Of a DNA stretch of 64,000 nt, positions 2,700 to 58,226 are shown piece by piece. The DNA lies in assembly GCA_001643675.2 (NCBI GenBank), contig LSRY02000021.1, positions 868,001 through 932,000 of the forward strand. The letters are read 5' to 3'. Position numbers and translations under genes: made by a program. The notes beneath the pieces are model-generated. The model was not told where the DNA came from. It searched no databases and saw nothing but the letters and a program-made list of their open reading frames with translations. Numbering within the stretch: the first letter of the stretch is position 1; each line of letters starts with the position of its first letter. Source of the stretch: Monocercomonoides exilis PA203. Lineage: Eukaryota > Protista > Preaxostyla.

Positions 2700-2959
2700 G
2701 TTTGCAAATTTGTAACTTAAGATAATAAAACTGCGTTATGAAGAACATATTCGAAAAGGATGGTAAGGACATATCTTTTTATGAAAGATAATTTGCATTA
2801 TAAGGTGTGTTCTTGACAACGTTGAAAAATACAAATAATTCTGCTTGGTCATTCTCAAAAATTAAAAATAGAATTTGTCAAATAAACGATTGATAGGAAA
2901 TAATATGAATTTCAGGCAAAAAAACATTCCAAAAATACTCAATTTCGGTTTATCAAATA

Positions 2960-3344
2960 TAAGCTCATCTTAAATTCTGGTGGTAATTCTGCTGGTTCTC
3001 TCACATTTCATTGGCCTCCGAAAGAAAAACCAAATCAGTTTTTGGTAAATGACTGTCAGTTTTTAAATAACAAATTGACTGCTTCTGCAAATTATGGAGG
3101 TGCTGCGCTGTGCTGCACAAGAACATATTCCTGGATGAGCGGGTTCAAATTCATCACATTCTGTTTCTTCGATGGCTACACAGCCAAAAACGAAAAAGGA
3201 AATGATGTATTCTTCAGTGGCAATGCCATAACTAAATCTCCATTCCAGCAATGTGGATCAACAACTCCAACACAAAGAGTGTGGAATGCAGGAACAGCTG
3301 ATAATACTGTGCATAATGGCAGATTGCAGCTAATCTTTTCTTAA
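2960..3344 (+). pseudogene. Captured fragment of a Cys-rich beta-helix-like repeat gene
   Basis: NDCQFLNN...GGAALC...FCFFDGYTAKNEKGNDVFF...QCGSTTPTQRV parallels YCLFHNNTAENDDYGHDIHI...DCYSSSASPRI in the 2633-aa ORF. No credible start or rest of gene. Confidence 0.6.
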
Positions 3345-5574
3345 CTAATTCTTCCAACAGAATATTTTTATCGAAATATTCTCTTTATCTTCCTTGTTTT
3401 CTTCCTCAAAGCCATCATTCTTGAAAACTCAGCAGTAACTGTTTCATTTACAGACATCGCTTTTTGACTTCATATATTTTTTTTCTCCAACGATTGCGGT
3501 GGAAGAAAGAACCTCTTCATCAAGGATGCCAAAAGATAAGATCCTCATCTTGTTAATTACAATCATGATGCTGAATCATTCAGCAAGTTGCATCTATGCA
3601 CGTTTCAGAAAATTATTATTTGTTCCATCATCCGACAGATGGATTCAGCGTTTTCGACTTTTGTGGAGCGCTGAAGTAATTTTGTGTTCATTTGCATTCA
3701 AAAGGAGTGTTATACATATTCAACAGATGCCTCATCACAGAGCAGGACTTCACATAGCAGAAAGTTGGCTGAAACAACACATGTGGAAACAAGCATCTCA
3801 TAAAATAGGTGATGCGAAAGAGCTCAAATGGAAGAAACATTCACAAATCGTGATGGTTTTACCATTTGCGAAACATTCTTGGACAATTTCTCTGAACCTG
3901 TATCTGCTACTCAGCAATAAAGTGAATACCACGCATTCAGCTGACAGCACACTCAAAATAACCACTTCTTCTCTTTTGCTGATGAATGTTCCTCGTTTCA
4001 GTTTCTCCTCTTTGCACCTGCCACAACAACAAATATGCTCAACAACTTTTCGCTCCCAAGAAACAGTTCAGGATTTCTAAGATATCTTCTTTACGGTCTT
4101 CTCTATCTTCATTGATCGCATCTCCAATGATATTATCGTCGACACCAACAATCATCTTCTCCCGCACCTCGTTCATTGTCATTCAATCCTTTTCCTTCAG
4201 CTTCAGTAATCAGTGCGATCTTTCTCTCTTCGGTGCACACCACCACACTGCAACAGATACTCAGATTGGGGCAATATGTGTCTCATTGACACCAACACAA
4301 AAATTGGACTTCAGCATATTTGTGGTGGAGTTCATTCATCAGCATAGCACTAATGACACAAAAAAGCAAATCGCTCAGAACCCGGTGCTCATTCCGCTGA
4401 AGTCTTCAACGTTCAAAAGCTCCACCAAGAATATTAAACACTCCACCCTGGGAAAGAAAGTGCTGGTGGGGGACAACAACATTACGGCTGATGAGAAAAC
4501 ATCCCTTCGTCTTCCAATACTCTGCTTATTTCGAAACACTGATTTCAAAACAACTCTTTCCATGAATTAACACTTGAAAAAACAATCCAAACAGATTAAT
4601 GAAGATATTCACTTCTTCGCATCACCGTCTTCTTCTGCATATAAATTCCCATTCATTTCTTCTTGGAATTCATCTTCGTACTCAATCTCCTTTTCCTCTC
4701 ATCTTATAAGGAAATATAATCCGATTCGTCTCTTTTTCAATTTCCGTCGCAACTTTCTTTTTTATTTTATTTGCAAAAGTTTCTATTTTTTCAACAAATT
4801 AGTCCCATATGACGCAATCAATCAATAAAAAATGAATGACTTTATCTGCGTGTGTTAAATGTTAAGAAAAAGAAAAAGAAAGGTAAAGTTTGAATAAGAA
4901 AAAGTCGAATTCTTTTTTTTTTTTCAGAAGCAGAAGAATTTTCTTTCAGAACGGAAAATAATAGGGAAAAATTTATTTTAAATTCCCATTTGACAAGAAA
5001 TTCAATACCAGCAAAGCAGAAATTTATTGCATTGCCTGTGTCCGACAGAGACACCACTTTCAGAAAACAACATCAACAGCAACAGTTCAACATTTCATTG
5101 AAAATTCGCACTTATATTGAACAAATATTTATTTTATTTTAAAACTTTCGTTTTTCATCATTTCAATCCGATTTAATTTTATTTTCATGCATCACGAAAT
5201 TAATACTCATTTCAAACATTCGTGAAAAATATTATAACGAACTTTTCATTAGAATGAAGTCAAGAATTAGAAAGAAATATCTTTCCGATTGTGATTTTTT
5301 ATTTTCAAACTTTATAGAACATTTATAAATAATGAAGCATTCAAAATGGATTAAATAATGCAAAATTTCATACTGAAATTGCTCAAATCGATTCCGATTC
5401 AAATATCATAAAAAAGATTCTTCGTTTTTTGATTGTAACAGTTTTATATTCAAAAATGAAATGTTTTAATAATTAACCGCTTTTGGCATGAATATAATAT
5501 TAAATCAATATTAATAAAGATATTTCTTCATTTAATCTTAATATAAAATTCAATAAATATGAAATAAAAACAAA

Positions 5575-5924
5575 ATAATAAAAATACAGACGTGAGGATT
5601 AATTTAACAAAAATTTTGAGAATAATGTTTAAAAAATAATAAAGGAAGTTTCAATTCGCACCTAATTTGCTCCTTTTTATAAATTGTTCTGAGCTATATG
5701 CTGTTTGATCTTTAATTTAGAAGCATTCGCGTTGAAAACAAAAAAAGACATAATAGAAGATTTAATAATGGGATTGATCATAAAAGATTTTCTGGGAAAA
5801 TTTTTGTAAAAGTTTGAAAAAACTGCTCCACCCAAAAGTGTTTATTTTTTATGCTATTTATTTCTTTTTTATTGAAAAGAAAAAAATCCTAAAATTGAAG
5901 GAGGTATTTTGTTGCACTTATGCC
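5575..5924 (-). repeat. Right TIR (350 bp)
   Basis: Reverse complement of 2350-2699. Confidence 0.93.
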
Positions 5925-6113
5925 GTTGCAAATTCAAAGAGAGGACGATGAAACCCAAGACGCATTGAACAGTGAACAGCACAGATCAGAAGAAGAAGAG
6001 GACATTTTCATTATACGCACAAGGGCACAAGCCAAAAAAGAGTCCAAGACATATGATTTCCGCTCCTTCGGTCGAAGGCCAGACTGCAAAGCAACAGCTT
6101 CCAACTAAGTTTT

Positions 6114-7253: not shown

Positions 7254-7950
7254 CAGTCAAAACCGGATATAATCACATCGGGTTTTGCACGACTTTTTAT
7301 GACCATATCCGATTGTGATAATATACAATGCTGCTTAACACAGAAAAAAATAAAAATAAAAATATTTATTAATTAATTTTGGGTCTAATTTTTTATTTTT
7401 TGAAAATTCTTCATTGAAACGCATTTTTCACTTACGAAACTTATTTTTTTTCATAAAAACACATTATTTTGACTTATTTGAGCACATTTTTGAAAAAGCG
7501 AATAATTGAAATTTTTGATCGAAAAAACGATTTTTCATGAAATATTCACCCATAATAATAAAAAATGTGATCACATGGGTGTATTTTTGTGAAAAATTCA
7601 TCTCGTTTTATTTTCTAAAAAAAATAAAATTTTCTTATTTTTTTCAATTTTTTATTCTCACGGATTAAACTTTGCTGAAATGGATATCAAAACCTGAACA
7701 ATGTTTTTATTTTCATTTTATTGAAGTTTCTAATGTGGGAACAAAAAATTGTTGAAAATATGAAATTTTTATTGTATTTGAAAAATTTACAAAAGTAACT
7801 TTTCAAAAAAATTCAGACATATATTTACAGCCCTGTGATTATATGCGATGGAGAATGAATGAAAAACAAACAAAAAATGTCGGTGCATCGAAAAATGTGA
7901 CTATAAACGAATGTGATTGTATTCGATGTGATTATATCAGGTTTAGACTG
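7254..7950. mobile_element. MITE of Tc1/mariner-pogo type, 697 bp
   Basis: 27-bp TIRs CAGTC(A/T)AAACC(G/T)GATATAATCACATCG with 2 mismatches; TA on both sides (7252-53, 7951-52); subterminal TGTGATTAT-like repeats; no ORF. Confidence 0.9.
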
Positions 7951-8957
7951 TATAACATAAAGAATTTTTCTAAAAAAATTTTTAACATATTTTTTTTTTC
8001 AAAATTCTGAGCAATAAAAAGTTCCATCACAGTATATCACAGAAGTTTGTATTCATTGAGGGAATAACAAAGAAATGTGTTGAAATGCTGCTATCAATGG
8101 TTGTTGAGATAATGGCATAATCCACAGTTATAAAATGTGTTCACCATTTTAAACACCAACAATATTTTTATCAAAAAATTTAGACTATTTTCTTGTGAGG
8201 TGAATAGTGCATTTGCCACAAATTAATTTGCTTTTGAAAAAACAATTGGGGCAAAAATACGGACTTTCAAGCTTTTTATGCACAAAGCACAAAAAAATAG
8301 TTTCACTTACAACATTTTTTAACTAAAAAATATTGCAAGATAAATTCGATTTTCATATTTGTAAACAAACATCATTGAAATCAAAACAGAAAGTTTTCCA
8401 ACATTTCACGAATGTCAAAAAATAAACCAATTTCTGTTGTGTTTTTTAATCTCAAAAAATCAATGAAAAGTGCATAATATTTCAATGAAAATGACTGAAA
8501 GAAAATATTCTTTCCCAATTGAATAGTAAGAATTCATTTGTGATTTGTGCTATTTTTTAAAGATTCCCGTTATGAAAAAAAAAATAAGATCAAAACTGGA
8601 ACGAAATTTTGATTTCAAAAAGGATCATCCATATCTCTTTTCAATTAATTTCAAAAACAATTCGTATTAAGAATCTCAAAAATTAATTATCAGATCAACA
8701 GATTGCTCCAAACTCGAAGTCAATCAGTTATCTGAATGAAAAAGTCTGAAAAATGAAAGAAAAAAGAAAAATATCACACAACGAAAACAAAATTTTAACA
8801 ATTTTACAAAACATAAAACTATTAATAAAGACATATTCACTTAATCATTTCTTTCTCAACCTCTCCAAAGTGGCTATGAATACAAATCAGTCGTACGGGA
8901 AAATAAATAAAGAAATAAAATTAATAATAAATTTAATAAAATTTATCAAAAAATTCA

Positions 8958-31555: not shown

Positions 31556-31696
31556 AGAATGAAAAGAATGAAAATTCTGTATAGTGTCAAATTTTTATTA
31601 GTACCCCGTTTTTTATTAGATCCTAAATTTTTTTTTCTCATATTGCTTCATATAGAAGCTTATACGCAATGAAAATAATTTTAAAACAAATAATAT

Positions 31697-32451
31697 ATTA
31701 TTATAAGGTTGTATACCAAATATTTTTGTAAATCATTTCTTTTAAAATAAGATCTGAATTTTTTAAGTTTTATTTTTTGATCAATGTTTTGCTCGTGTTT
31801 CCACGAGTTTTTGAAACCAAGCATTTTCCTTGTTAGCATTGTTTTTAAACTTTTCTTTTTAACAATTTTGGTTATTTTATAACTATAGAAACTCTTTTTT
31901 TTCAATAGTTTTCACACATCACCTTTTTTTCGTAAAACTGAAATTTCAACAAAGGAAATTGTTATTAACAAGATTGCTTGTTTTTCAATGATGGATTATC
32001 TTATGTAATATTATATATATAAGCTTTCTTTGATATTTATATATGTATGAAAAATAAAACGAGAAAAACAAAATATCAACTTTTTCATTTTCTGATATAA
32101 ATACTAATTGATTCAAATTTTCATCACATTTATTATTTGATACACTAATTTGCAAATCATGCACGTATGATTAATTAAAAAATCAACAATATATTTCTTC
32201 AAAATTTCAGTTTTACGAAAAAAAGGTGATGTGTGAAAACTATTGAAAAAAAAGAGTTTCTATAGTTATAAAATAACCAAAATTGTTAAAAAGAAAAGTT
32301 TAAAAACAATGCTAACAAGGAAAATGCTTGGTTTCAAAAACTCGTGGAAACACGAGCAAAACATTGATCAAAAAATAAAACTTAAAAAATTCAGATCTTA
32401 TTTTAAAAGAAATGATTTACAAAAATATTTGGTATACAACCTTATAATAAT
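31697..32451. mobile_element. Foldback-like MITE (755 bp, 250-bp TIRs) nested in the left TIR of the 12.9-kb element
   Basis: 31697-31946 is the reverse complement of 32202-32451 (hence the twin ORFs 31681-31905 and 32243-32461). Removing it plus one ATAT (or TA) copy restores CAAATAATATGGGTG as in the right TIR. Confidence 0.92.
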
Positions 32452-35400
32452 ATATGGGTGATTATTTTTGAAATCATAAAATTTCAAATGAAAATTTCGA
32501 TGATGGATTTTTGTTTCATAACAAAGCTGATAATCAAATTTTGAGATGATATAAGCAGTATTATCAACAATTTTATAATGTTTGATTGTCTCACATTCAC
32601 TTCAAGAGAATAATTGATATCTTTTTATGTTTTTTTTGAAAAATCAATTTTGAAAATTATAAATAATAATTCAAAAATAAAACAGCTAGCTGATGAATTA
32701 GTTTTCCATGCATAGAATGTTTTTGATAAAAAACAGCTATGATCAAAATCAAGAATTCTCATTTGAAAAAAGAAAAAAATAAGGGAATGTTTGAGTTATT
32801 AAATATGTCAAATTTTTTTTTAATTTTTGTGTATTTCAATAACAGTTACAACTGAAGGATGAAGACTAATCGTAAATATTCATTGATCTTTGCATCTGTT
32901 GGTCTTAACAACTTCTTTCGAATGAATCGTTGTTTGGATTAAAAATATGACTGATTTAAAAGAAAAGTTGTTCAATAAAAAAGAAGTTTCTTGGATCAGC
33001 CCGTTCAATTGCAGGTTTAATTTTGTCAACGAAGGTTTTGATATATTCATAGTCTTAAATGAATTTTTTCTTTGTATTTATCGTCACTTCCTTAAATACT
33101 TTTTTCGTGGGGCTTTATTTTTTTGCGTTGCCATTTTGAAAGACTGTTATTTCTTATCAAACTGTTTCATATTTTGATAGCATGCTGATTTTTCCTATTT
33201 TGTAATTATCTTCTTCTCAAACCAATCCAAAAAAATAATAAACCTTTAAACCGAATAAAGCTTTAAAGTTGCATGGTTGAAAATTTCATCCACAACTTTG
33301 GGAGATCGGAAGATTATAGAAAATATTCTTTTTTGTGTTTCATATTTTTTCTTTTTTGACAATTATTTATTATTTTGTAAAAACTTTCTTGCTCATTTCA
33401 ACAAGAAGAAATGTCAAAAAGCAAACATAACGAATCAGAAAACTTACAGCTGTGCATATCACAAATCTTTTTTTGGGTTATCTTTTTTGTTAAATTATTT
33501 CATGAATTAGTAAAAAATAAATATTTGAAAAATGAAAACAATATCTATAATTATTTTCCTTGAAAATGACAACCTCAGAGTGATTCCCTGCGTAATTTGA
33601 ACTCAACGACACATCAACTTTTCCATCTCTTCGTTCAGCGAATGATTGGAACAAAACAACTGGCTGGTGGAACTCCAGAGAAGAAGTATTTAGGAAGGTG
33701 TGCATGCAAGAGTCAGAAAGCAAGTTTCTCAACATGCTCTAGCATTCCCTTCTTCTTGTGCATGAGCAATGCCACGTTCATTTATCCTCATTCTGGCCAT
33801 CCTAAGTGGAAGGCACGCGCAGTAGCAGACGCGCTTCACATCTTCCGCAGCTGGCTCTGCAGCTCCAGCACACACCCTAGCACCGCTGCATTCTCCTCCG
33901 CCTCCTTCCATTCTCAGCACCTCCATCCCTCCCATGTGACATGCTCCTTCCTCCCTCCTTTCCGCAGCCTCCCAAAAGCACCCACTGCTGCCCGAAAGCT
34001 GCTGCTATGAACCGCACTCCTCCCAATACACACACCGTTGCACCCTCCGCCAACCCTCCCCTCCACACACATGCTCGCACTCAGCCACAACCACAGGCAC
34101 AACCCCTTCTCCTCCTCCCTTCTTCCTCTTTCTCACCACATTCACATCCACAAGCCGACACCTCCCTTCCCCCTTCTCCACTCCCTTCCCCAGCTCTTCC
34201 CTCTTCTCCTCCACACAGCACCCCCCGCCCCAAACAGCCCCTACCACTTCCCCTGTATTCTGCTCTGTACATCCGATGACCGCTCAGAAGAATTGGCGGA
34301 TGCCAAGTCCTGCGCCTCTGCTTCCAGACCGAAGCAATTCCTCAGCGATTCCGAAAACGCAAGCGCTGTCTTTTATTGTGCCCCTTCCTCCTCGTCAACA
34401 TCCTTTTCCACCAACACTTTTCATTCTTGCTCCGTCATCTTTGCAATCGAAGACACAGCATCCACAGACCACACTCACACATCCAACAATATTTCATCGA
34501 AATATCTGCACATCACCTTCATCATTCCACTTCCTCCTTCAGCTCTTCTTTTCTCTTCCAATTCTCTCTTGACTTCTCTTGAGAAATGTAGTTAATTCGA
34601 AATCCTTTCTACCAAACCTTTATAACTAAAAAATCCTATTGATAAAAACATCCAAATAGACAGAAAGGCAAGTCATGTCAGATTCTGATGTTCATGTTGA
34701 TTCTGGATAATCTCTTTGATTTCATTAAGGCAAATTTCTTTTTCAAATAACTAATAAAAAACGATAATGAAATTCAAAAATATCAATAATGGAGTTGTTG
34801 ATTACATACACAGTTGCATTTGTAACTCAAAGTTAACAAAGTCATTTCTTTTTCCTTTTTAACTTTTTCGTTTTTCTCCTTGAACGATGTTGCTTTCAGA
34901 AAGCAGCGAATACAAAATGGAAACAATTCTAAAGAAAATATGCTATAAAGCAAAAGATAGCATACGCAAAGATCAGCAAGAAACTACTCATTCAGTTCTT
35001 CATTTTTTTTCAATTTTTCTTCATTTGACGCTTTCAATGAATCTAAAAAAGCTCGATAATAATTTGAAAAGAACACATTTGTAATTAAACAAAAAAAAGC
35101 AACTGATAATCAACATATATATAAGCCAAATAATTTAATTGTAAGAATTGGAATTTCTCGTTTATTTTTATTTCTATGTTTTGACTGCAATTCAAATTCT
35201 TTGATCAAAGCTGCGTTAGTGATTTGGTGAAGATTAAAATTATGATGTTGTGTGGAACCTGATAATTATGATGTTTGTATTTGATAAAATCTATTTCAAA
35301 TGAAACAAGCCATTTCATTGAGAGCGACAGTAATAAATTGGTTCTATTCTTAAGGAGAGTGATCTATTGTATTGGAGTGCATGCAAACGAATGAAATAAT

Positions 35401-37336: not shown

Positions 37337-38864
37337 AAAAGAAATGACAACCAACAACATACAGATGTTCTTTGAGTATGCATAGTGTAAATATAGATCC
37401 TTTGACATTCCCACCATTGTTTTCAAATGAGTTGTTATATTCGAATAAGTCATCTTATTTTCCAAATTCTTCCAATTTTATCTTCTTTTTCTATAAGCTT
37501 TTGATAAATTTCAAATTGTTTTTTGAATCAAACAAATACATATTTCACATCGAGAATGTGTTATTTTGTCTCAACATATTTCTGAGCAAAATGCTTGAAA
37601 AGTGAAGTTGAAGAAGGAAAAGGAGAAGCTCAAATAGAGGAGCTAACTGCAGAAGAACAAACGATAAGTTAGTGAGAATTTATCGTCTAATCAAACAGAC
37701 AACATATCATTATAAATGCAGAATCTGAGCGCGCTGCTCTCCTGTTCTGTTCTGATTCAGAAAAACATCTTCGCATTTCCCACGTATGCAGCATATATAA
37801 ATAAGTCTTGAGGAAAAGAATGGATGAGCTGGATTTAACGAACGATGAGATTGCAGGAAAAGATAACAGTGTGGAGAAGGCGATGGAGCTGAGGAGGATG
37901 AGGAGAGGGAAATTGGGACTGAGAATGGGAGTTGAGCTTTTGATTGAGCCGGTTGGGTTTGAACAGAGCATCGAAGGGAGAGAAGGGGACGGGAATAAAA
38001 GATAAAATGGATGTTACGAGCCGGATGTGGAATTGAGGCATTTTGGAACACGAAAGAAGGTGGAGTGTATTGATGAGTTTGTTACGATTGGGGCTGTCGT
38101 TCCGCAGGAAAGTGTGCTGTCGATAGACGTACGTTATGTGACATTTACGATAAGCCAAGTGTTCTGCGTGAAAGGAATAAGTGTGTTGTTTTCTTTTTCG
38201 CATTTGATGTTTTGTTCTTTCAAAACCTTTTCATTCACTTTTTATTGCAAACAAAACAATATTTTCGTTGAAGATATTCAAGATGATTTCTCTATCATTT
38301 CAAAAAAACAAGATAAAATAATAATAAATAAGAAGGAATAAAATTATTGTTTTTTTTAACTTTGAAGCGTCTTTATTAAGTTTTTCAAAAGAATAATAAT
38401 AAATGATGTTCAATATGCTGATGGAAGGAATAAATAAAATTTTGAAAAAGTTTCACCAAAAATCAAAATGAATTATGAGTTGGCAAAACAATGATTCAAA
38501 CTGACAGAAAATAGATAATAATAAATTCAAATGAAGATGTCAGCTTGTTGCAGCCGCTTTTGCAAAAGATTACAGCAATATCTTCTTTTCTTTCAATTAT
38601 CAGCAGTTTTAAATCGAACTGTCTTGTAACAGTTTTTTGCAACTTATTTCATAACTGAGATGACTCTGTAAAGAAAATGAAAGCAATAAAATAGTTATCG
38701 AATTAATACTAAATCTATCATATCTAAATCAGTTAAATTTTATCAAAATATAATTTTTCACACATATTGATCACTTCAAATGAAAATAATGGAAGTTGAA
38801 CCATAATTTTCATTTTTTCTTTCTTGAAAATTGACGAATTTTTTTCCGAATAACCAAATTCTCA

Positions 38865-41800
38865 ATGATGTTTTCGGAACTTTCGCCTTCTCGAAAAAGT
38901 GAAATATGCTCATGTGTATGGACTTTTATGAATAAAAAATCATCGAACCAAGTTGTGGAGTTGATGAATCATATGTTTTTGCACACAAATTTTGGTAAGA
39001 AAAATTTTACAAAGATTCAAAGAATTTTTGATGGTATGTTATAGATGAATTCTTTGATAATTAATTCTTTGTTGTTTATTTTATATTTTTCTTCTCAGAT
39101 ACAAATAAATTTGTAACTCTTCGTCTGGCCAGTCTGTACAATAAAGAAAAAAACTTGCACACGAAAGTCGCTATTTTAAAGTGTGTGTGCTTCGAATATA
39201 GTTTATTCCAACTCCGCGAGCTTGGTTTTGAGTGCACGCTAGGAAATTATACGCATGCTAAACAAACCGGATCAACAGAGACTTTTGATATTTCCATTCC
39301 GGATAAACCACCTACACCACCTTCGAAATCTAGTTTGTTTTTAAATAACTGTTTTTTGAAATTTCTATTAATTATTTTTTAGAACTGAGTCCCCAAGATC
39401 AACAAAAATTTGAACAGTTTTTGATTGACAATTCTACAGAATCTTCCGAGTCAATATGCCGAATATCTCCTTCCAAAAAAAGTTTTATTTTTTTTTTTAT
39501 TGTTTTCTTTTCACATTTTTCTTATTTTTTTTCTTTTTTTTTATTCGTAATTGTTCAGATTCCTCACAAATTATTGATGATGATTTCGCAATTTAAAACT
39601 CGGATTCGAACATGGAACCTGATATCGATCCCCTTAGAAATTATTTTTCGCAAAATCATATCACTCCGCGTGAAATTAACGATCGTTCTGTTTTTAATCC
39701 GAGTATTCAAACTTCTGAAAGCAATCAGATGGATATCGAAAGTTCAACAGAGGATTTTCATGACAATTCAACATATTTAGTTTTAACACGGTCTCAAGCT
39801 TATTTTGATAACGATTGGTTTTCATTTGATAATCCAAATGAATCCTTGACAATGAGACAGACAAACAATTCAATGATTAATGACGAGAGCAATGACAACA
39901 ATTCAGTTCAAGTTTTATCTGGAAACAACTCTGATATAATGAATACTTCGGATGTAGAAAAATCATCTCAAGTTGAACTTTCAAATACATCAGAAGACAA
40001 ATCTTTGTTAACAAGTCTTGCACTTCCAAACTTAGGTAATACATGCTGTTTAGCTTCACTGATTCAAGTATTTCGATCTGTCTTCAAATATGGAGGAGTG
40101 TTTAATATTCGGAAAGGGAAAATCGATAAATTTCATGCACAGTTAAACTCTCTTGTCAATAATAGCTTTGATAAGTTGAATCCATCTAATTCAAATTTTA
40201 AAAAATCATGGAACAAATTATTTGCGAAAAAATGGGAGAAGAATCATAATTTGAGACATGATGATCAACAAGAATTTTACATTTCGTTTTTTGATTTTTG
40301 CCAAAATTTATGCAGCACAACACCAAAATTGAATAATAATATAAAATCAACATTCAGCTTTCCAAAAATTTGTTCAAAATGCAACATTCGATCTGAAGGT
40401 CCAAAAGAAATTTCATCGTTAATAAGATTGCAAGGTCACAATATTGTTGATGCCTTCAATGATGCATCCATTATGAATTCGGATAATTCAAATAACAAAG
40501 AAGCATACTGTGAGCTTTGTAGTCAAAACACATATCATGATTCTTTTTTGAACATCGAGAACTTTCCAAAATTTTTATTTATTTCATTGGAAATCCCCAG
40601 TGGCATTCAGTATTCAAACACGCGCGTGCATCAAAATATCAGTTTCTCTAGCATTCAAGGGAAACAAGTTTTGAGTGACATTCATAATTTAAACGCTCAC
40701 AATTACACTCTGATTGGACAACTATTCTACAACGGTGACAATGATAATGGTCATTTTTTTTGCTTGAGAAGAATTGATGATTCATTATTCGATTCTCTTT
40801 CAAGGCATTCAGAAAAATGGATTTTGTGCAATGATGGAAATATTTCATCAATTTCAAAACCTATAAATGAAGAAATAAACAAACATATTTCAAATGGATC
40901 AAGACCACTCCTATCAATTTTCATGCAAATTTGTCTTAGAGAAAATTATGCAGTGAATAATCCAGAATCTCCAAATTTGTTTTTTTCGAAAACAGCAAAA
41001 GAAAAATCCACTGAACATTTTAACGCTTCAGATATTCACTTCGAAGATACAAACACTTCACAATATTCTAACATTTCACACTCACATCAAAACAATGGAT
41101 CCCCATTTGAGCAAATTAATATCAGTCACAATACAAATACTGCTATTCCTTCCTCATCTGCAAACAACAAACAAAAACACTTTCCATCTGATATCACAAA
41201 TAATTCAACATTATCTGTTCCTTCACAATCATCACTTATTCCTCGAAGCTCACTTCAGTGTCAACATCCAATTCAGCTTCACATGTCGGAAAATAATCAA
41301 GGAGAAGAGGCTGGAAATTCATCATCTTCTGAAAGATTTTGCAACAATAACATTTCATTTCAAACAAGTCATTCACATTCATTTTCTCATGTCTATTCTG
41401 AAGAACAACAATTTAACCAATCCTCTTTTTTCACATCGTGCAATGGCAATGATACAGCCAACACTAGACCTCAAACAAGGCTCATCAACATCCCTAAGAT
41501 AAAATTATATGAAAAATTCAAATTACTGAACATAAAAATGTCTGCTAGTACATTTTATAAACGAACAGCACATCTGAAACGAGCAAAAAGAAGAACTGAT
41601 TTATGCGATCTGTGTGAAAAATATGAATCACTGGTCAAAAAAAAGGAAACTTTGAAATCACTTGGAAAATCTTTGGATAAAAGAGATGTGGAAACAATGG
41701 AGTTGATTCATAACCACAAGATAATTGCTCATCATCAGCAAACACATTTTCGATTCATGAAGCAGAATCTGACTAATGGAGAAGCGCTCATATTATTCGA

Positions 41801-42734
41801 TTTCAAAGAAAACTGGATAGCTCCAATAAGACGGAATTCAGTGAGTCGTGATTTCTATGAAAAGGAGGAAATATCACATCTTTGTATAATCGTTTACAAA
41901 ATTGGATCAAAAAAGAAAATTGAAAAACATATTTTCAATTATTTCTCAAATAATTTATCTCATGATTACAGGTTTACGATTGAGTGTTTGCAGAGTGTCA
42001 TAATAAACCCCATTCTCAAAGAAATAACGAATTATCACTTTATGTGTGACACAGGGACACATTTCAGAAACTCAAACGTTTTACATTTTATTTTATCTGA
42101 ATCTTCTCCTCAAATGAAAAACAAACGTTCTACTCTTTCTTTCTTTGGAGAAAAACATGGAAAGTGTGAGTGCGACGCTGTATTTGGATATTTATCGAGG
42201 TTAATGAACAATTTTTTAGATGATCAAACAGTGATTTACAACATTGATGATTTAGTTGAATTTTTCCAAACAAATTCATTATTGTCGAGTGCGAATAATC
42301 AAAACTTAAGCCAAAATAGGAACGAAACTTTTCGATATTTCTTAAAGTGTGATTGTTATTGAAGCAGTTTAAATCTTTAAAATCAGTTTTGTGTGTTTTT
42401 TTTATTATTAATTAGATACAATCCATCCAACAAAATACTGTGGAGAAAATTGAATATTATATCATTGAAGAAATATCTCTTCTACGAAAAAAGAGGAAAC
42501 GAAATTTTTCGATCGATAGTCACACCAAAAAATTTGAGAGGAACCGAGAAAATCACTTTCAAAGAAGAGAGAAGTAGAGATGATAGAACAAGGAAAAAAT
42601 TCAACAGGCCGACTGGAGAAAGTCGCTCATTATCACTGGGCGAATACACTTTTAAGATTCTTAAAGATAGGAAAAAAATGTTTTGTAATTATTTAGAGAG
42701 TGATGATTTTAATAATAATGAAGCTGTCTTTTGA
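38865..42734 (+). CDS. Sola-like DDD transposase with an embedded USP (peptidase C19) domain; 5 exons, one in-frame TAA at 39594-39596
   Basis: Exons 38865-39033, 39099-39332, 39383-39481, 39559-42346, 42416-42734 join in frame. USP Cys box LPNLGNTCCLASLIQ, CSKC/CELC Zn ribbon, His box GDNDNGHFFC and WILCNDGNI. Then LYEKFK..MSASTFYK, TDLCDLC, LFDFKEN, SHD, MCDTGTHFRN, HGKCECDAVFG (three candidate catalytic Asp). Confidence 0.8.
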
Positions 42735-42754
42735 GTTGAAATTGTTTTGTTTTC

Positions 42755-43001
42755 AATATTGAACTTTTGACTTATGTTCCGTTTGAAAAGCCTGCTGCTC
42801 AAGCCTTGAATGTCAACCGAAAGGCTAAACTTTCAAGGTACCTCAAATTTTTTCTTGAATAGTTAAAGATTTGAGGCTAGGCTGATTCCATCCTGTGGCT
42901 GTATTGTGACCGGTCCAATACAGCCACTTGAAGGCTTTGGGTCCAGAATCAGCCTCCCAGGGTGGGCTTTCTTATGGAACATAAGTAAAATATTCAATAT
43001 T
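42755..43001 (+). ncRNA. Putative structured RNA / cis-acting element of unknown family
   Basis: Nested stems: 42755-63/42993-43001; 42770-82/42974-86; 42785-96/42961-71; 42804-10/42832-38 capped by CC-GAAA-GG; 42841-52/42865-76; 42879-88/42946-55; 42895-906/42916-27. Several G-U pairs indicate + strand RNA; GC-rich relative to flanks. Confidence 0.7.
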
Positions 43002-45001
43002 ACTCACTTTTTTATTCAAGTCTTTTTTTTTGAATTGTGTCGACACATCTTTTTGTTTTATTATTGTTTTTTTAATGATATAAAGTCATGAAAAATTTTG
43101 TATTTTAAAAATCTTGAAAATTTGGAAAAACAAAATTTTGTTTATTATATCTTTAATTGGAATTTTTTTGGATTCAAACAATTTGTCAATGTATTTTTTA
43201 TATTCTTCCATTCCTATTTCCACATATTTTTAATTTATAAATGTGCGTTTTTTTGTATGTTTTTTTGTTTTTAGTCTGAAGATTATTATTCATAAAAAGA
43301 GGATAGTATCTTTGAAGAAAAAAAATGCTTTGAACGAAAGGTTACTCAAAGAAAAATTATCTGGAGATAATAAATGGATGCAAAAATATATTTAGAAAAA
43401 GAAAAAGTTAAAAGAGGTTTCAATGAAGGCAGTGGCTTGAAAAATGTATGATCAGTCTGAGATCCAAATTTGTTTATCACATGTGAAGAGCTTCAATGAA
43501 GAAAATCTCGAAAATAATGCAAAGATAATAAATGGCTATCACATGTTTAAAGTCAGTAATCCACATAACTGAAAATCCGTTTTTTCTTTTGTTGGTTTCA
43601 AACAAACGTACAAGAGTGATGATGCTCCAAGACGATATACAAAGATACTGACTGAATTGCGGAGTTAATCAGAATTTGATACAAAATAATTGAAATAGGA
43701 CAACAGATATTTTATAAGTCAAGAAAATCTTGTTTGAAATTATCGAACATTTTTCAAAAGAAGAAATGAAAAGAAAGCATAGATAAGTGCATTATCTGAA
43801 ATTCAAACTTTTCAGAGAAATTCAACAAACTGAAACTGTTCACCTAACAGATTCTTTTCGAAATATTTCATCTTCTGTAAGTTGATAATAAATGAATTGT
43901 TAAAAAGTGACCTGAATCGACATTCAAGGACAGAACACTGCCTATAAAAATTATACAGAAAAAAATATTATTCAAACACCTGAATTCCTGATAGAAGATG
44001 AAATAATTGGAAAAAATTGTGCTGAATCATTATTAACATAAAATAAATGAATTATTCTCAAAGCTTGATATTTGTAAAATAAATAACATCTAAAATAATC
44101 ATAAATAAACAAGTTCACACAAGTCAACATTTGTCACATGTTATAACTGATATAGTAAATTTGTTTGAAATAAAAAAGTGTTTTCGCAAATGTTTCCAAA
44201 ACTTATGGGTTTCAAAAAAATATCAAGTTGATTAATGTTTAACTTTTTTAATGAAAATACAGTTTTTCAAAACAATAGTAATTTTTTGATAAATTATTGT
44301 CACATAAAGTTATTTTTTGTAAGGTTTTAAGTGCGACATTTAAGAGACCGAAAAATAATATGATTTCAAAAATAATCACCCATATTATTTGTTTTAAAAT
44401 TATTTTCATTGCGTATAAGCTTCTATATGAAGCAATATGAGAAAAAAAAATTTAGGATCTAATAAAAAACGGGGTACTAATAAAAATTTGACCCTAAATG
44501 ATGTTCGAAATACCGCATTTTTCTTTTTGTGTTATAAGTCCGTTGCAAAATGAATTGCTTGTATTGCGACAAACGCTGTTGCCTAATTTTTAACGTTTTT
44601 TACAAAATTCAATGAATAAACTGATATCAAGGATGAAAAATGTAAAATTTTAAATTGATTCAAGAAGGAACGCTAACACAAGAGAATCATTGATTGATGA
44701 ATAATATCATTGCCTTCTACCAAATAAAGTCATCATCAAATTTCGAGTCTTTCGTTTTGATAGTTCTCTCTTTCTCTCTTTCTCTCTCTCTCTCTCTCTC
44801 CTTTTTTTTTTTTTTTTTTTTTGTTTGTTTGTTTGAAAGGAGATGGATAGTCAAGAATCATTTTCACCTCAAAAAAGCTTATCCTTTGTTCTCTGCAGGG
44901 AATGGTTCACAAATTGTGCATCAAGTTATCTGTCAAGAAGTTTAACTTCTTATTCTCTTTCGAATCTTTCTTTTGCGAATTGCGCAATGTAGCAATTTAT
45001 C

Positions 45002-45249
45002 ATATGTCTAAATTTTTATGAAAAGTTCCTTTTGTTTAATTTTCAAAGAAAATAAAAATTTCGTATTTCGATCAAATTTTTGTTCCCACTCACCAAATTT
45101 CGCTGTCATTAAAACGATAACTTGACAATGTTATTATTTCCATCTTAGTGAAGTTTCGTAAGTGGGAACAGAAATTTGATCGAAATATAATATTTTTTCT
45201 TTATTTGAAAATTAAACAAAAGGAACTTATCAAAAAAATTTTGACATAT
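45002..45249. mobile_element. Small degenerate MITE (~248 bp, ~100-bp imperfect TIRs)
   Basis: ATATGTC..AAGTTCCTTTTGTTTAATTTTCAAA..TATTTCGATCAAATTT.TGTTCCCACT is mirrored at the right end; TA|TGTC...GACA|TA termini. Confidence 0.8.
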
Positions 45250-55651: not shown

Positions 55652-58226
55652 CCATGGGTGCTTTACCCGCCCCCTGGTGCCAAACCCGCACCCACAAATT
55701 GAATTAAAAGTTCACATTTTGTTATATGAACACTATTCATTTTCAATCGTTGAGCAAAATAAAAATAGGACAAGTACATCATTAAATGGAGAAGTTTTAT
55801 TGTTTGGTGTTTGAGATAAAAAGGCTTCGAAGTTTTTTTTAAAAATTCTTCAACTTAATCAGTTTGCGGTAATACAAGAACAAAAAAAACCAAATGGGGT
55901 ACTCACTCGTTCTTCTTTATCAATAATCACTTTCAGCAGATGCAAACCTTTCAATGTGAAAAAACAAACAAACAAACCACGATGACAACGAAGAATAATA
56001 CTTTTCGCGACATTCAATTTCTTTTCTGCTGAAAGATGGTGAAACTGCTCTTTGAACTGGCTTCTCCTTTTCCGGTTTTCTTCTTTCATCAATGAAGCTT
56101 TCTCCACTTGTATCATCGTTGATTATTTTGTAAATTATCATTTTCTTTTTCTTTTTATGTTTTATTTCTCTTTTATCTTCATCTGCAGAAGAGCTTGACA
56201 AAAGAATGTTGAATTCTTCACGAGAATGCTTGGTTTTTGATGTTGAAGGAGTCGAAGAAGTTTTCGCTTTTTCTATTTCTTTATATTTGGATCGAAGAAA
56301 TGCAAGATGCTTTTCTGCATATTCAAGTTGTTTTTTCAATTCGAAGCTGTCCAAATCTTCTATAATTGTTGTTGAATTTAATTCGTGATCATCAGACGGA
56401 GAAGAACAGATCGATTCGTTCGGCGAAGTTGATTTTGTTGAGTTTGCTTTTTCTGAGGAATAAATATCTGATGGTATTGATGAAGCTGAAACACTTTGCC
56501 TTTTTGGTGGAGAATAGCTTCCAAAAAGTTCTTCACGCCAATCTTGAGACGAAGAATGAAGATCTTCTTTCGATGGAGAGGCTCCAATAGGTGCTCCAGA
56601 TACGCGAGAGAGAACGGGAGCTGCAGCAACAGGCCAGACTCCTGTCTTAATGAATGCTGCCTTCACTGTTGATGGAACACAAGCTGCAGCCAAGGCTTCG
56701 GGGAGAATTTCTGCAAGTTGGGCTCGATAAGAAGGGAGAGAAAATGGAGAAGGAATAACAAATTTGTTATTCAAAGTGGATTTTAGTCGAGAAAAAACAC
56801 ATGAGTCACACGGCTGAAGCAAATGTGTCATATTAGGTGGGAATTTTTTCAGAATGATGAAATTTTTTTCAGCTGCTTCAATTACAGTTTCGTCATTGTG
56901 AGTTGAATGATTATCCATTAATAAAAGTGCACGATGAGAACTTGTAGGTTTCACTTTCTCCGCGATTAATGGAATCCAGTAATTAATCATAATGTACTTG
57001 AAGATATCCTTAGTGATCCACCCGGAAGATGAAAAAATATATCTGATATCAAATGAAGAAAGTGTGCGAAACTCTTTCGGGAGTGTTTTCTTTGGCCATA
57101 GAAGAAATCGCGGTAATGAGGATCCGTCAGCGCAGATACAAAGGCATATAGTTGCATTCGGGACTTTCGGAACGAAGGGAACTTGTGGAGGAGTTTGACT
57201 TTTTAGGCAAACAACCAGTTTGTTCGATGATTCCCCACATGAGATAGACGATTCATCAAAATTGAATATATCCGCAGCTGTGATATTGTATTCCGTAACA
57301 GTGCTTAACAATTCTGAAAACCATCCTCTGATATTTTCTGGTGACTGCGCTGATATTTTTGCAACGTCCGTGTGCCTTGCGATTGCAGCCTTCAAAACAT
57401 CACTTCGTTGAATTAATTTATATGCATATTTTTTGTTGATTGTTTTGAATTCTTGCTTCGGTTTTGATGATTTTTCTATTTGATCCACACACTTAGCAAC
57501 ATGAAAATGTTACAAAAACAAATTAATAAATAATGCAAACCATGTTTTGCACATCGCGAATTCGAACTATTGTCTGATTTGATAAAAGGACTAGCACCTG
57601 GTTCTCAATTTCTTCCAATTGCTCGTTCGTAATTGCCTGAGGGTGCCCATTCCTTCCAGCTTCTCTGCCAGCTCTTTCCGCTCTTATACCTCTTTTCCAT
57701 GCATCTTTTGACACAACCTTTGCTTTTATGGCAGTTGAATATTTCACTTTAAAACTTTTTCGAATTGCGAAAAGCTTTTTCGATGGGGATTTGAATGATC
57801 GATATTCCTTGGTTGCAAGAACTCTGTGCAACTGAGTTGATGATAATTCAGGTTTTTCAGTCATCTTTATTGGGTGTGATCAAGCATATCAAAATTTCTT
57901 TTGTTGTCATTTTGAATCAAAGATAACGTTAACAAATTTCGTTGTCTGACATACAAAGCGAATAATATTGAACTGGTTTATTATTTTCACTAGCTCTGAA
58001 AAAGTTGCGATAAATATAGTCTTTGGATTAAAGAAGAAACTGGCTTAATTTTGAAAGAACAAAAATTAACGGAGATTGAGCAAAAGCAAAACTTGGATTG
58101 TTGACATCATTTTTAGCTGTTTTAAAATAGTTTTCAATAGTTAAACATCTAATTGTGTTTTGAAAGCTCATTCAAATATGAATAGGGTGCGGGTTTGGCA
58201 CCAGGGGGCGGGTAAAGCACCCATGG
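55652..58226 (-). mobile_element. Autonomous pogo/Fot1-like DNA transposon, 2575 bp
   Basis: Perfect 42-bp TIRs CCATGGGTGCTTTACCCGCCCCCTGGTGCCAAACCCGCACCC (55652-93 / 58185-226); TA TSD; internal transposase. Confidence 0.95.
55920..57864 (-). CDS. pogo/CENP-B-like DDE_1 transposase (DD35D)
   Basis: Exon 57864-57541, 49-nt GT-AG intron, exon 57491-55920. IFNFDES, CICADG, SSGWIT, LLLMDNHSTH, PPNMTHLLQPCD; 35 residues between the 2nd and 3rd Asp. Confidence 0.93.

Follow-up and report, generated by a model that had tools for sequence, protein, structure and literature searches.

Results

The transposase gene and the segment behind it

The window, by which we mean the whole 64-kb stretch of Monocercomonoides exilis DNA analysed here, is AT-rich and eukaryotic in character, and it carries on its plus strand a transposase gene with a highly structured segment directly behind its stop codon. 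The main exon of this gene is a 916-aa open reading frame at 39612-42346 (+), whose start may lie further upstream, near 38870. It is followed by a putative 69-nt in-frame intron of the GT..AG type (42347-42415, +), which holds an apparent stop codon at 42360-42362, and by a last exon (42416-42734, +) that closes with a TGA at 42732-42734. The intron is predicted from the sequence, and its splicing is supported by the post-intron frame, which is 50% identical to a paralogous M. exilis locus (L001, described below). Read in this way, the intron-containing gene appears to be intact.

Pfam places a ubiquitin C-terminal hydrolase (USP/UCH) domain at residues 121-463 of the encoded protein (PF00443, E 9.6e-13). 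The C-terminal 350 residues are a transposase-like domain that no Pfam model matches and in which conserved D/D/D-containing motifs (DFKEN, CDTGxHFRN and GKCECD) are visible; the original prediction, which was made from the letters of the window, had likewise named a USP-transposase. The closest protein is MONOS_18616 of M. exilis, with 54% identity over the transposase domain, and no TnpB/OrfB match was found in the upstream protein with Pfam at E values up to 10. The L001 gene that encodes MONOS_18616 stops at an in-frame TAA (7776-7778) at a point where the window frame continues; protein-level homology runs about 60 codons past that TAA, which indicates that the MONOS_18616 copy is truncated or decaying.

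The structured segment, which we refer to as the module, begins 20 nt 3' of the TGA, in agreement with the distance originally given. No open reading frame of at least 100 aa was found in the 3 kb 3' of the module. A stop-codon read-through signal was considered and rejected, as the frame beyond the TGA closes after 12 codons.

Fold of the module

The module occupies 42755-43001 (+), 247 nt in all, and RNAfold gives it a branched fold in which a closing rod encloses three arms. The minimum free energy (MFE) of this fold is -102.1 kcal/mol, against -57.9 ± 4.4 kcal/mol for 200 dinucleotide shuffles (z = -10.1), and none of the 200 shuffles equals the native energy. The stability of this fold is far beyond chance, and every helix proposed in the original prediction is found where it had been placed, within an RNAfold layout identical to the one proposed.

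From the MFE structure and the homologous modules described below, the architecture can be described as an outer rod (P0) and a closing helix (P1) that lead into a four-way junction, from which the arms P2 and P3 and a P4-P5 domain emerge, all on the plus strand. The 5' strand of P0 (42755-42782) pairs with its 3' strand (42974-43001) over 25 bp in the MFE structure, and this pairing is additionally supported by covariation between the window and L001. P1 is formed by GAAAAGCCTGCT (42785-42796) and GGTGGGCTTTC (42961-42971), which covary across four sequences, and its 5' strand runs directly into the conserved junction GCUGCUCAAG. The P2 arm (42803-42839) bears a CC-GAAA-GG cap at 42817-42824, and the P3 arm (42841-42876) is present in the MFE structures of both the window and L001 with differing sequences; both are variable peripheral arms. 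The GNRA tetraloop of the original prediction is this GAAA cap, which is present in the window and is not kept in the paralogue L001.

The 3' part of the module is a conserved domain (42875-42962) comprising GGCUAG, P4, the internal loop UCCAUCCUG / CUUGAAGGCUUUGGGUCCAG, P5 (42895-42927) and UCCCAGGG. P4 pairs AGGCTGATTC (42879-42888) with GAATCAGCCT (42946-42955) and carries P5, a perfect 12-bp hairpin (42895-42906 with 42916-42927), both helices being supported by the MFE structure and by covariation. The internal loops of the module are CAU / CUUUGGGUCCA, together with a CU bulge, and its core is a GC-rich multi-helix junction; the sole U6 run (42848-42853) is base-paired within P3. Two stretches of the 3' domain are self-complementary, namely the P5 loop GACCGGUC (42907-42915), which L001 shares letter for letter, and the internal loop UGGGUCCA (42936-42945), which is represented by the perfect palindrome UGGCCA in a further related copy, L031. 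The window copy is an expanded form of the module: its four-way junction, from which the variable P2 and P3 arms and a highly conserved P4-P5 domain branch off, is closed by P1 together with an outer rod of 25 bp.

Related modules behind other transposases

L001 is a paralogous M. exilis locus (GCA_001643675.2, contig LSRY02000019.1) whose transposase is 54% identical to that of the window. At the equivalent position it contains 101 nt that are 87% identical to the 3' half of the window module, and the segment L001:8018-8250 folds into the same rod and three arms (z = -9.3); this module starts about 63 nt beyond the end of the open reading frame homology. A covariance model, R1, was built from the window and L001 only and searched against 185 kb of fetched loci. 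It returned two more sense-strand matches, both right after transposase stops on contigs of JGI metagenome 3300010163, and no other sense-strand match in the 185 kb. The stronger match, L035:4431-4598 (48.5 bits, E 7e-9), lies 19 nt downstream of the stop at 4412 of the gene for protein P0157, and the weaker, L031:2086-2251 (33.7 bits, E 1.4e-5), lies 47 nt downstream of the stop at 2039 of the gene for protein P0004. Their folding z scores are -6.0 (L035) and -4.4 (L031).

P0004 is approximately 38-41% identical to the window transposase domain, and P0157 is a 54%-identical relative of P0004. Neither P0004 nor P0157 has a USP domain in Pfam searches, which indicates that the RNA travels with the transposase and not with the USP fusion. 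L031 and L035 carry one long hairpin arm in place of P2 and P3. In L001, L031 and L035 the module is likewise closed by an outer rod, unrelated in sequence. Similarity among the modules tracks similarity among the proteins, with the window grouping with L001 and L031 with L035.

Beyond these four loci, R1 run with its filters off gave no match in 26 metagenome relatives (23-38% protein identity, mostly 25-35%), in the Blattamonas fragment L030 or in L032-L034, and a rough folding scan of the 3' flanks of those distant relatives gave no consistent signal. Relatives at 25-35% transposase identity lack the module, which implies that the superfamily as a whole can do without it. Protein collections yielded one annotated M. 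exilis paralogue only, and bacterial and archaeal genomes and viral contigs scanned with the RNA core and a protein profile gave no match. A search of public sequencing runs for the locus returned DNA runs only, M. exilis runs among them. In these M. exilis runs, the contig depth over 42880-42987 is about 10 times that of the flanks, and the most frequent variants form two compensatory pairs within P5, one of 42903 A>G and 42919 T>C and the other of 42904 T>C and 42918 A>G; together these observations indicate that the genome holds many diverged copies that keep the P5 hairpin.

Two further observations concern sequences outside the four loci. At L009, a 160-nt segment (about 2934-3093) 3' of a distant transposase relative folds with a z of about -17.7; its sequence is unrelated to the module, and it is probably a terminal foldback or a long hairpin. 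From the bovine gut, the metagenome runs X5 and X6 contain low-depth contigs of 162 and 180 nt that match window positions 42239-42400 and 43024-43203 with 0 and 1 differences, respectively; judged by these matches, they could derive from a near-identical element in a rumen Monocercomonoides or from cross-sample carry-over.

Covariation, strand and conserved bases

Covariation was assessed in an alignment of the window, L001, L031 and L035, which is a set of four sequences from two sources only and was fitted to the model. With this composition, standard pairs fill 96.6% of pair cells; the shuffles reach 76%, and sliding the partners by 1-3 columns lowers the share to 33-48%. Of the 50 pairs, 24 have changed on both sides, compared with 3-5 for slid partners. 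None of five covariation measures is reached by any of 500 shuffles. Doubly changed pairs are found in P1 (6 of 11), P4 (6) and P5 (9), while the U·G pair that closes P1 (42796/42961) is invariant in all four sequences. When the window and L001 are considered alone (RNAalifold), 16 of 61 pairs have changed on both sides, among them 7 of the 11 aligned pairs of the P0 outer rod and 5 pairs of P5, and the P2 arm also covaries between these two copies. The expectation that pairing would be maintained next to homologous transposases is thus borne out at four loci.

Across the helices of the four sequences there are 22 G·U cells and 2 A·C cells. The plus strand folds more stably than the minus strand in L001 (-93 vs -81 kcal/mol) and L035 (-63 vs -39.5 kcal/mol), with a small difference in the window (-102 vs -95 kcal/mol) and none in L031. 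Taken together, the G·U excess and the plus-strand folding energies identify the folded strand as the sense strand, as expected for RNA, and they are in line with the earlier suggestion, made in part from the G-U wobbles, of selection at the RNA level.

The unpaired and junction nucleotides are the most conserved part of the module. Invariant or nearly so in the four sequences are GCUGCU(C/U)A after P1, GGCUAG before P4, UCC(A/G)UCCUG and CUUG(A/C)AGG..UG.G.CCAG around P5, and, ahead of the 3' strand of P1, UCCCAGGG. Two partners are available to the CCU in the first loop, AGG (3 bp) and GGG, and the four sequences fit both arrangements; a UCAAG/CUUGA pairing is found in both M. exilis copies and is absent from L031 and L035. 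No pseudoknot of at least 4 bp kept in all four sequences was found, and likewise no helix of at least 4 bp between unpaired columns.

Position within the transposon

Similarity between the window and L001 spans from about 38870 (tblastx start near 38872) to 45-75 nt beyond the module, where the two loci share a palindrome. This continuation places the module inside the element, in the expected 3' UTR. The shared palindrome, TGTCGACA (43038-43045), lies between the module and a candidate 3' terminal repeat. Each locus has a single occurrence, the 64-kb window at these positions and L001 at 8315-8322, at a distance of 37-67 nt from the end of the module, and the palindrome may be a conserved protein-binding or end-related site.

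The candidate 3' terminal inverted repeat itself (43050-43089) is tentative, being the best local inverted match of the flanks (score 36), with its partner at 38283-38324. L001 has a candidate terminal inverted repeat at 8319-8343 with 3239-3264. No clear target-site duplication was found at the candidate ends, which are tentative in this AT-rich sequence.

Comparison with known RNA classes

Rfam 15 gives no match at gathering score in the whole 64-kb window. Under permissive settings, the best matches overlapping the module score 16-19 bits, at noise level against thresholds of 63-80; no ribozyme family matches the module even at E up to 5-10, and nothing is found in L031 or L035 at E up to 5. 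ARAGORN predicts no tRNA-like gene in 42000-43600. These searches are in line with the earlier view that no tRNA, SRP, RNase P/MRP, snoRNA or hammerhead signature is recognisable in the module. Full-text literature searches found no structured RNA described in oxymonad or Sola-type transposons, and neither Rfam nor the searchable literature contains the RNA family to which the module belongs.

For the role that we propose below, the ENE comes nearest as a precedent. This triple-helix stability element occurs in the mRNAs for transposases of mobile elements in plants, fungi and slime moulds (Tycowski et al. 2016, reviewed in PMC7583470); the original statement that DDE/D transposases are not generally described with dedicated structured RNAs had overlooked these elements. 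As is proposed for the module, the ENE (PMC7583470) is a structure that acts in cis from the 3' part of the message of a DNA transposon, but it is a stem-loop whose U-rich internal loop clamps the poly(A) tail, whereas the consensus structure of the module has no opposed U-tracts, and on that basis we reject an identification of the module as an ENE.

The omegaRNA (reRNA) of TnpB/Fanzor elements is likewise a non-coding RNA 3' of a transposon protein gene and near the element end. Its protein partner is a RuvC nuclease, whereas the gene upstream of the module encodes a USP-fused DDD/DDE-type transposase with no such Pfam match, and it consists of a scaffold with a free 3' guide across the transposon end, whereas P0/P1 pairing takes up the 3' end of the module. 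With its ends locked in a 25-bp rod, no TnpB/Fanzor-like open reading frame beside it and conserved transposon sequence continuing beyond it, the module is not an omegaRNA or guide. The original prediction of a transposase-associated non-coding RNA therefore stands in so far as a conserved, covarying module lies behind four transposases, and falls in its analogy to omegaRNA and guide RNAs.

Bridge RNAs (seekRNAs) of the IS110-IS1111 elements resemble the module as transposon-encoded structured RNAs with internal loops that are tied to one recombinase family. They differ in being bacterial, in serving DEDD recombinases, in lying upstream of the gene, within the non-coding end, and in having loops complementary to target and donor DNA, a complementarity that was not found in the module. 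The 3' UTRs of non-LTR retrotransposons (R2, stringent-type LINEs) also form conserved structures at the 3' end of the transcript that are read by the element's own machinery, but they act as templates for reverse transcription, whereas the element described here has no reverse transcriptase and is of the terminal-repeat cut-and-paste type.

Discussion

We are highly confident that the segment is a real, selected member of a family of structured RNA-like modules carried by a transposon clade. This family would belong to an oxymonad-type clade of cut-and-paste transposons, in which the module lies on the sense strand between the transposase stop and the 3' end of the element. An alternative is that the segment is an unrelated dispersed MITE or a chance palindrome that happens to lie behind this gene. 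A 34-nt inverted repeat, 82% complementary, does bound the module, and the genome is rich in foldback repeats, but this outer repeat differs in sequence between copies and yet keeps its pairing, the flanking tetranucleotides (TTTC and ACTC) differ and form no target duplication, and no second copy of the module was found in the 64-kb window. Moreover, four diverged transposases all have the module behind them at the equivalent position, and the similarity between modules follows that between the proteins. We reject the MITE interpretation on the covariation of the outer repeat, the differing flanks and the occurrence of all four copies behind transposase genes, and consider the explanation as a whole exceedingly improbable.

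As to function, our leading interpretation, held tentatively and at slightly less than even confidence, is that of a cis-acting 3'-UTR module of the transposase mRNA. The module would be transcribed within the 3' UTR of this mRNA and may act in cis on the message through its stability, 3'-end formation, export or translation, with the rigid junction presenting nearly invariant unpaired bases (GCUGCU, GGCUAG, UCCRUCCUG, CUUGMAGG, CCAG and UCCCAGGG) to a conserved partner. Support for this comes from the position of the module, which is that of a 3' UTR, and from its form as an insulated domain, closed by a long rod and without a free end. The constancy of the junction bases, while the transposase has diverged to approximately 38-41% identity, suggests a slowly evolving partner, for which a host factor would be a likelier candidate than the fast-diverging transposase. 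Structured 3' stability elements in the transposase mRNAs of other DNA transposons, as reviewed in PMC7583470, provide a precedent. The weak strand asymmetry of folding energy in the window and its absence in L031 count against an action at the level of the mRNA, as does the lack of the module in more distant transposase relatives, and the findings fit a role in transposition as well as one in the message.

Alternatively, the module could be a functional RNA partner of the transposase (an RNP cofactor controlling or directing transposition, possibly dimeric through the self-complementary loops) or a new class of self-processing RNA, and we regard this pair of possibilities as somewhat unlikely. 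As a cofactor, which we consider unlikely when taken by itself, the module would be an excised or stable RNA that serves as a scaffold, as an assembly or cis-preference signal or as a regulator of transposition, and would represent a eukaryotic DDD/DDE counterpart to omegaRNA or bridge RNA. Its strict linkage to one transposase clade, with which it co-diverges, and its location near the 3' end of the element would fit such a role, as would the self-complementary GACCGGUC and UGGGUCCA stretches (UGGCCA in L031), which could pair two RNAs; in this respect they are a single observation pointing to a possible RNA-RNA dimerisation interface. However, both ends of the module are buried in the long rod, so that a free guide segment is lacking, the unpaired motifs have hardly changed during the divergence of the transposase to about 38-41% identity, no helix of at least 4 bp between unpaired columns is shared by all four sequences, and a search for complementarity to the ends of the element found none. 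Self-processing, to which we assign a distinctly low probability, would mean a new RNA, self-cleaving or otherwise processing, by which the transposase transcript acquires its 3' end independently of host polyadenylation signals in the flanks. Ribozymes are frequent in other mobile elements, and the combination of an invariant junction core with covarying helices is reminiscent of small ribozymes; against this stand the lack of a ribozyme match in the permissive Rfam searches and the fact that no hammerhead, HDV-like or twister core is visible and no conserved pseudoknot was found.

The structure might alternatively be read as DNA, for instance as a subterminal signal that is extruded as single strands or a cruciform, or as a set of palindromic sites recognised by the transposase in cutting and pasting. 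The distance from the module to the candidate 3' terminal repeat is approximately 50-90 nt, the region contains several palindromes, among them the downstream TGTCGACA, and the nearly equal folding of the minus strand in the window and the symmetry of L031 would also be compatible with such a signal. The preponderance of G·U over A·C cells and the presence of invariant G·U pairs are, however, unexpected under both-strand or duplex selection, the plus strand is clearly favoured in L001 and L035, and no counterpart of the module was found at the 5' end of the element. To our knowledge, multi-branched junctions with conserved unpaired bases are not known at the ends of DDE/DDD transposons either, and we hold a DNA-level signal to be very unlikely.

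Eukaryotic DNA transposons are viewed as a protein and two DNA ends, and apart from the ENE, which clamps poly(A), and the guide RNAs of Fanzor nucleases, we know of no structured RNAs that have been described for them. The module adds a different, strongly conserved and covarying fold that travels with a whole transposase clade, both in a protist that lacks mitochondria and in one or more further organisms. Should it do no more than boost the transposase message, as a cis-acting 3'-UTR element might, it would add a new type of expression module for 3' UTRs, in a lineage about whose RNA biology almost nothing is known. If instead it binds the transposase or cleaves itself, both the class of RNA and the layer of transposon control would be new, and, should the RNA be a partner of the transposase, the oxymonad elements would be the first known case of DDD/DDE transposons that depend on a structured RNA of their own. 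The M. exilis genome has a large unclassified repeat fraction (35% unclassified; PMC8767320), for which the conserved module offers a handy annotation marker.

Other repeats and mobile elements in the window

The window contains a second, unrelated transposase, a 522-aa open reading frame at 55920-57488 (-) with a DDE_1 (pogo/Tc1-like) endonuclease domain (E 2e-17), and model R1 gives no copy of the RNA module near it. Foldback or MITE-like structures are represented by a 364-nt inverted repeat (2339-2702 and 5572-5935, 99%, with a 2.9-kb spacer) and by a hairpin at 45002-45249 with 120-nt arms at 83% and an 8-nt loop. A 115-nt stretch is repeated in inverted orientation at 99% complementarity (31582-31696 and 44382-44496, 12.7 kb apart) and brackets the transposase gene and the RNA; this pair might mark the two ends of a larger, composite element or belong to an unrelated family of repeats. 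The left 115-nt copy is adjoined by a 271-nt foldback (31693-31963 and 32185-32455) whose arms are 97% matched.
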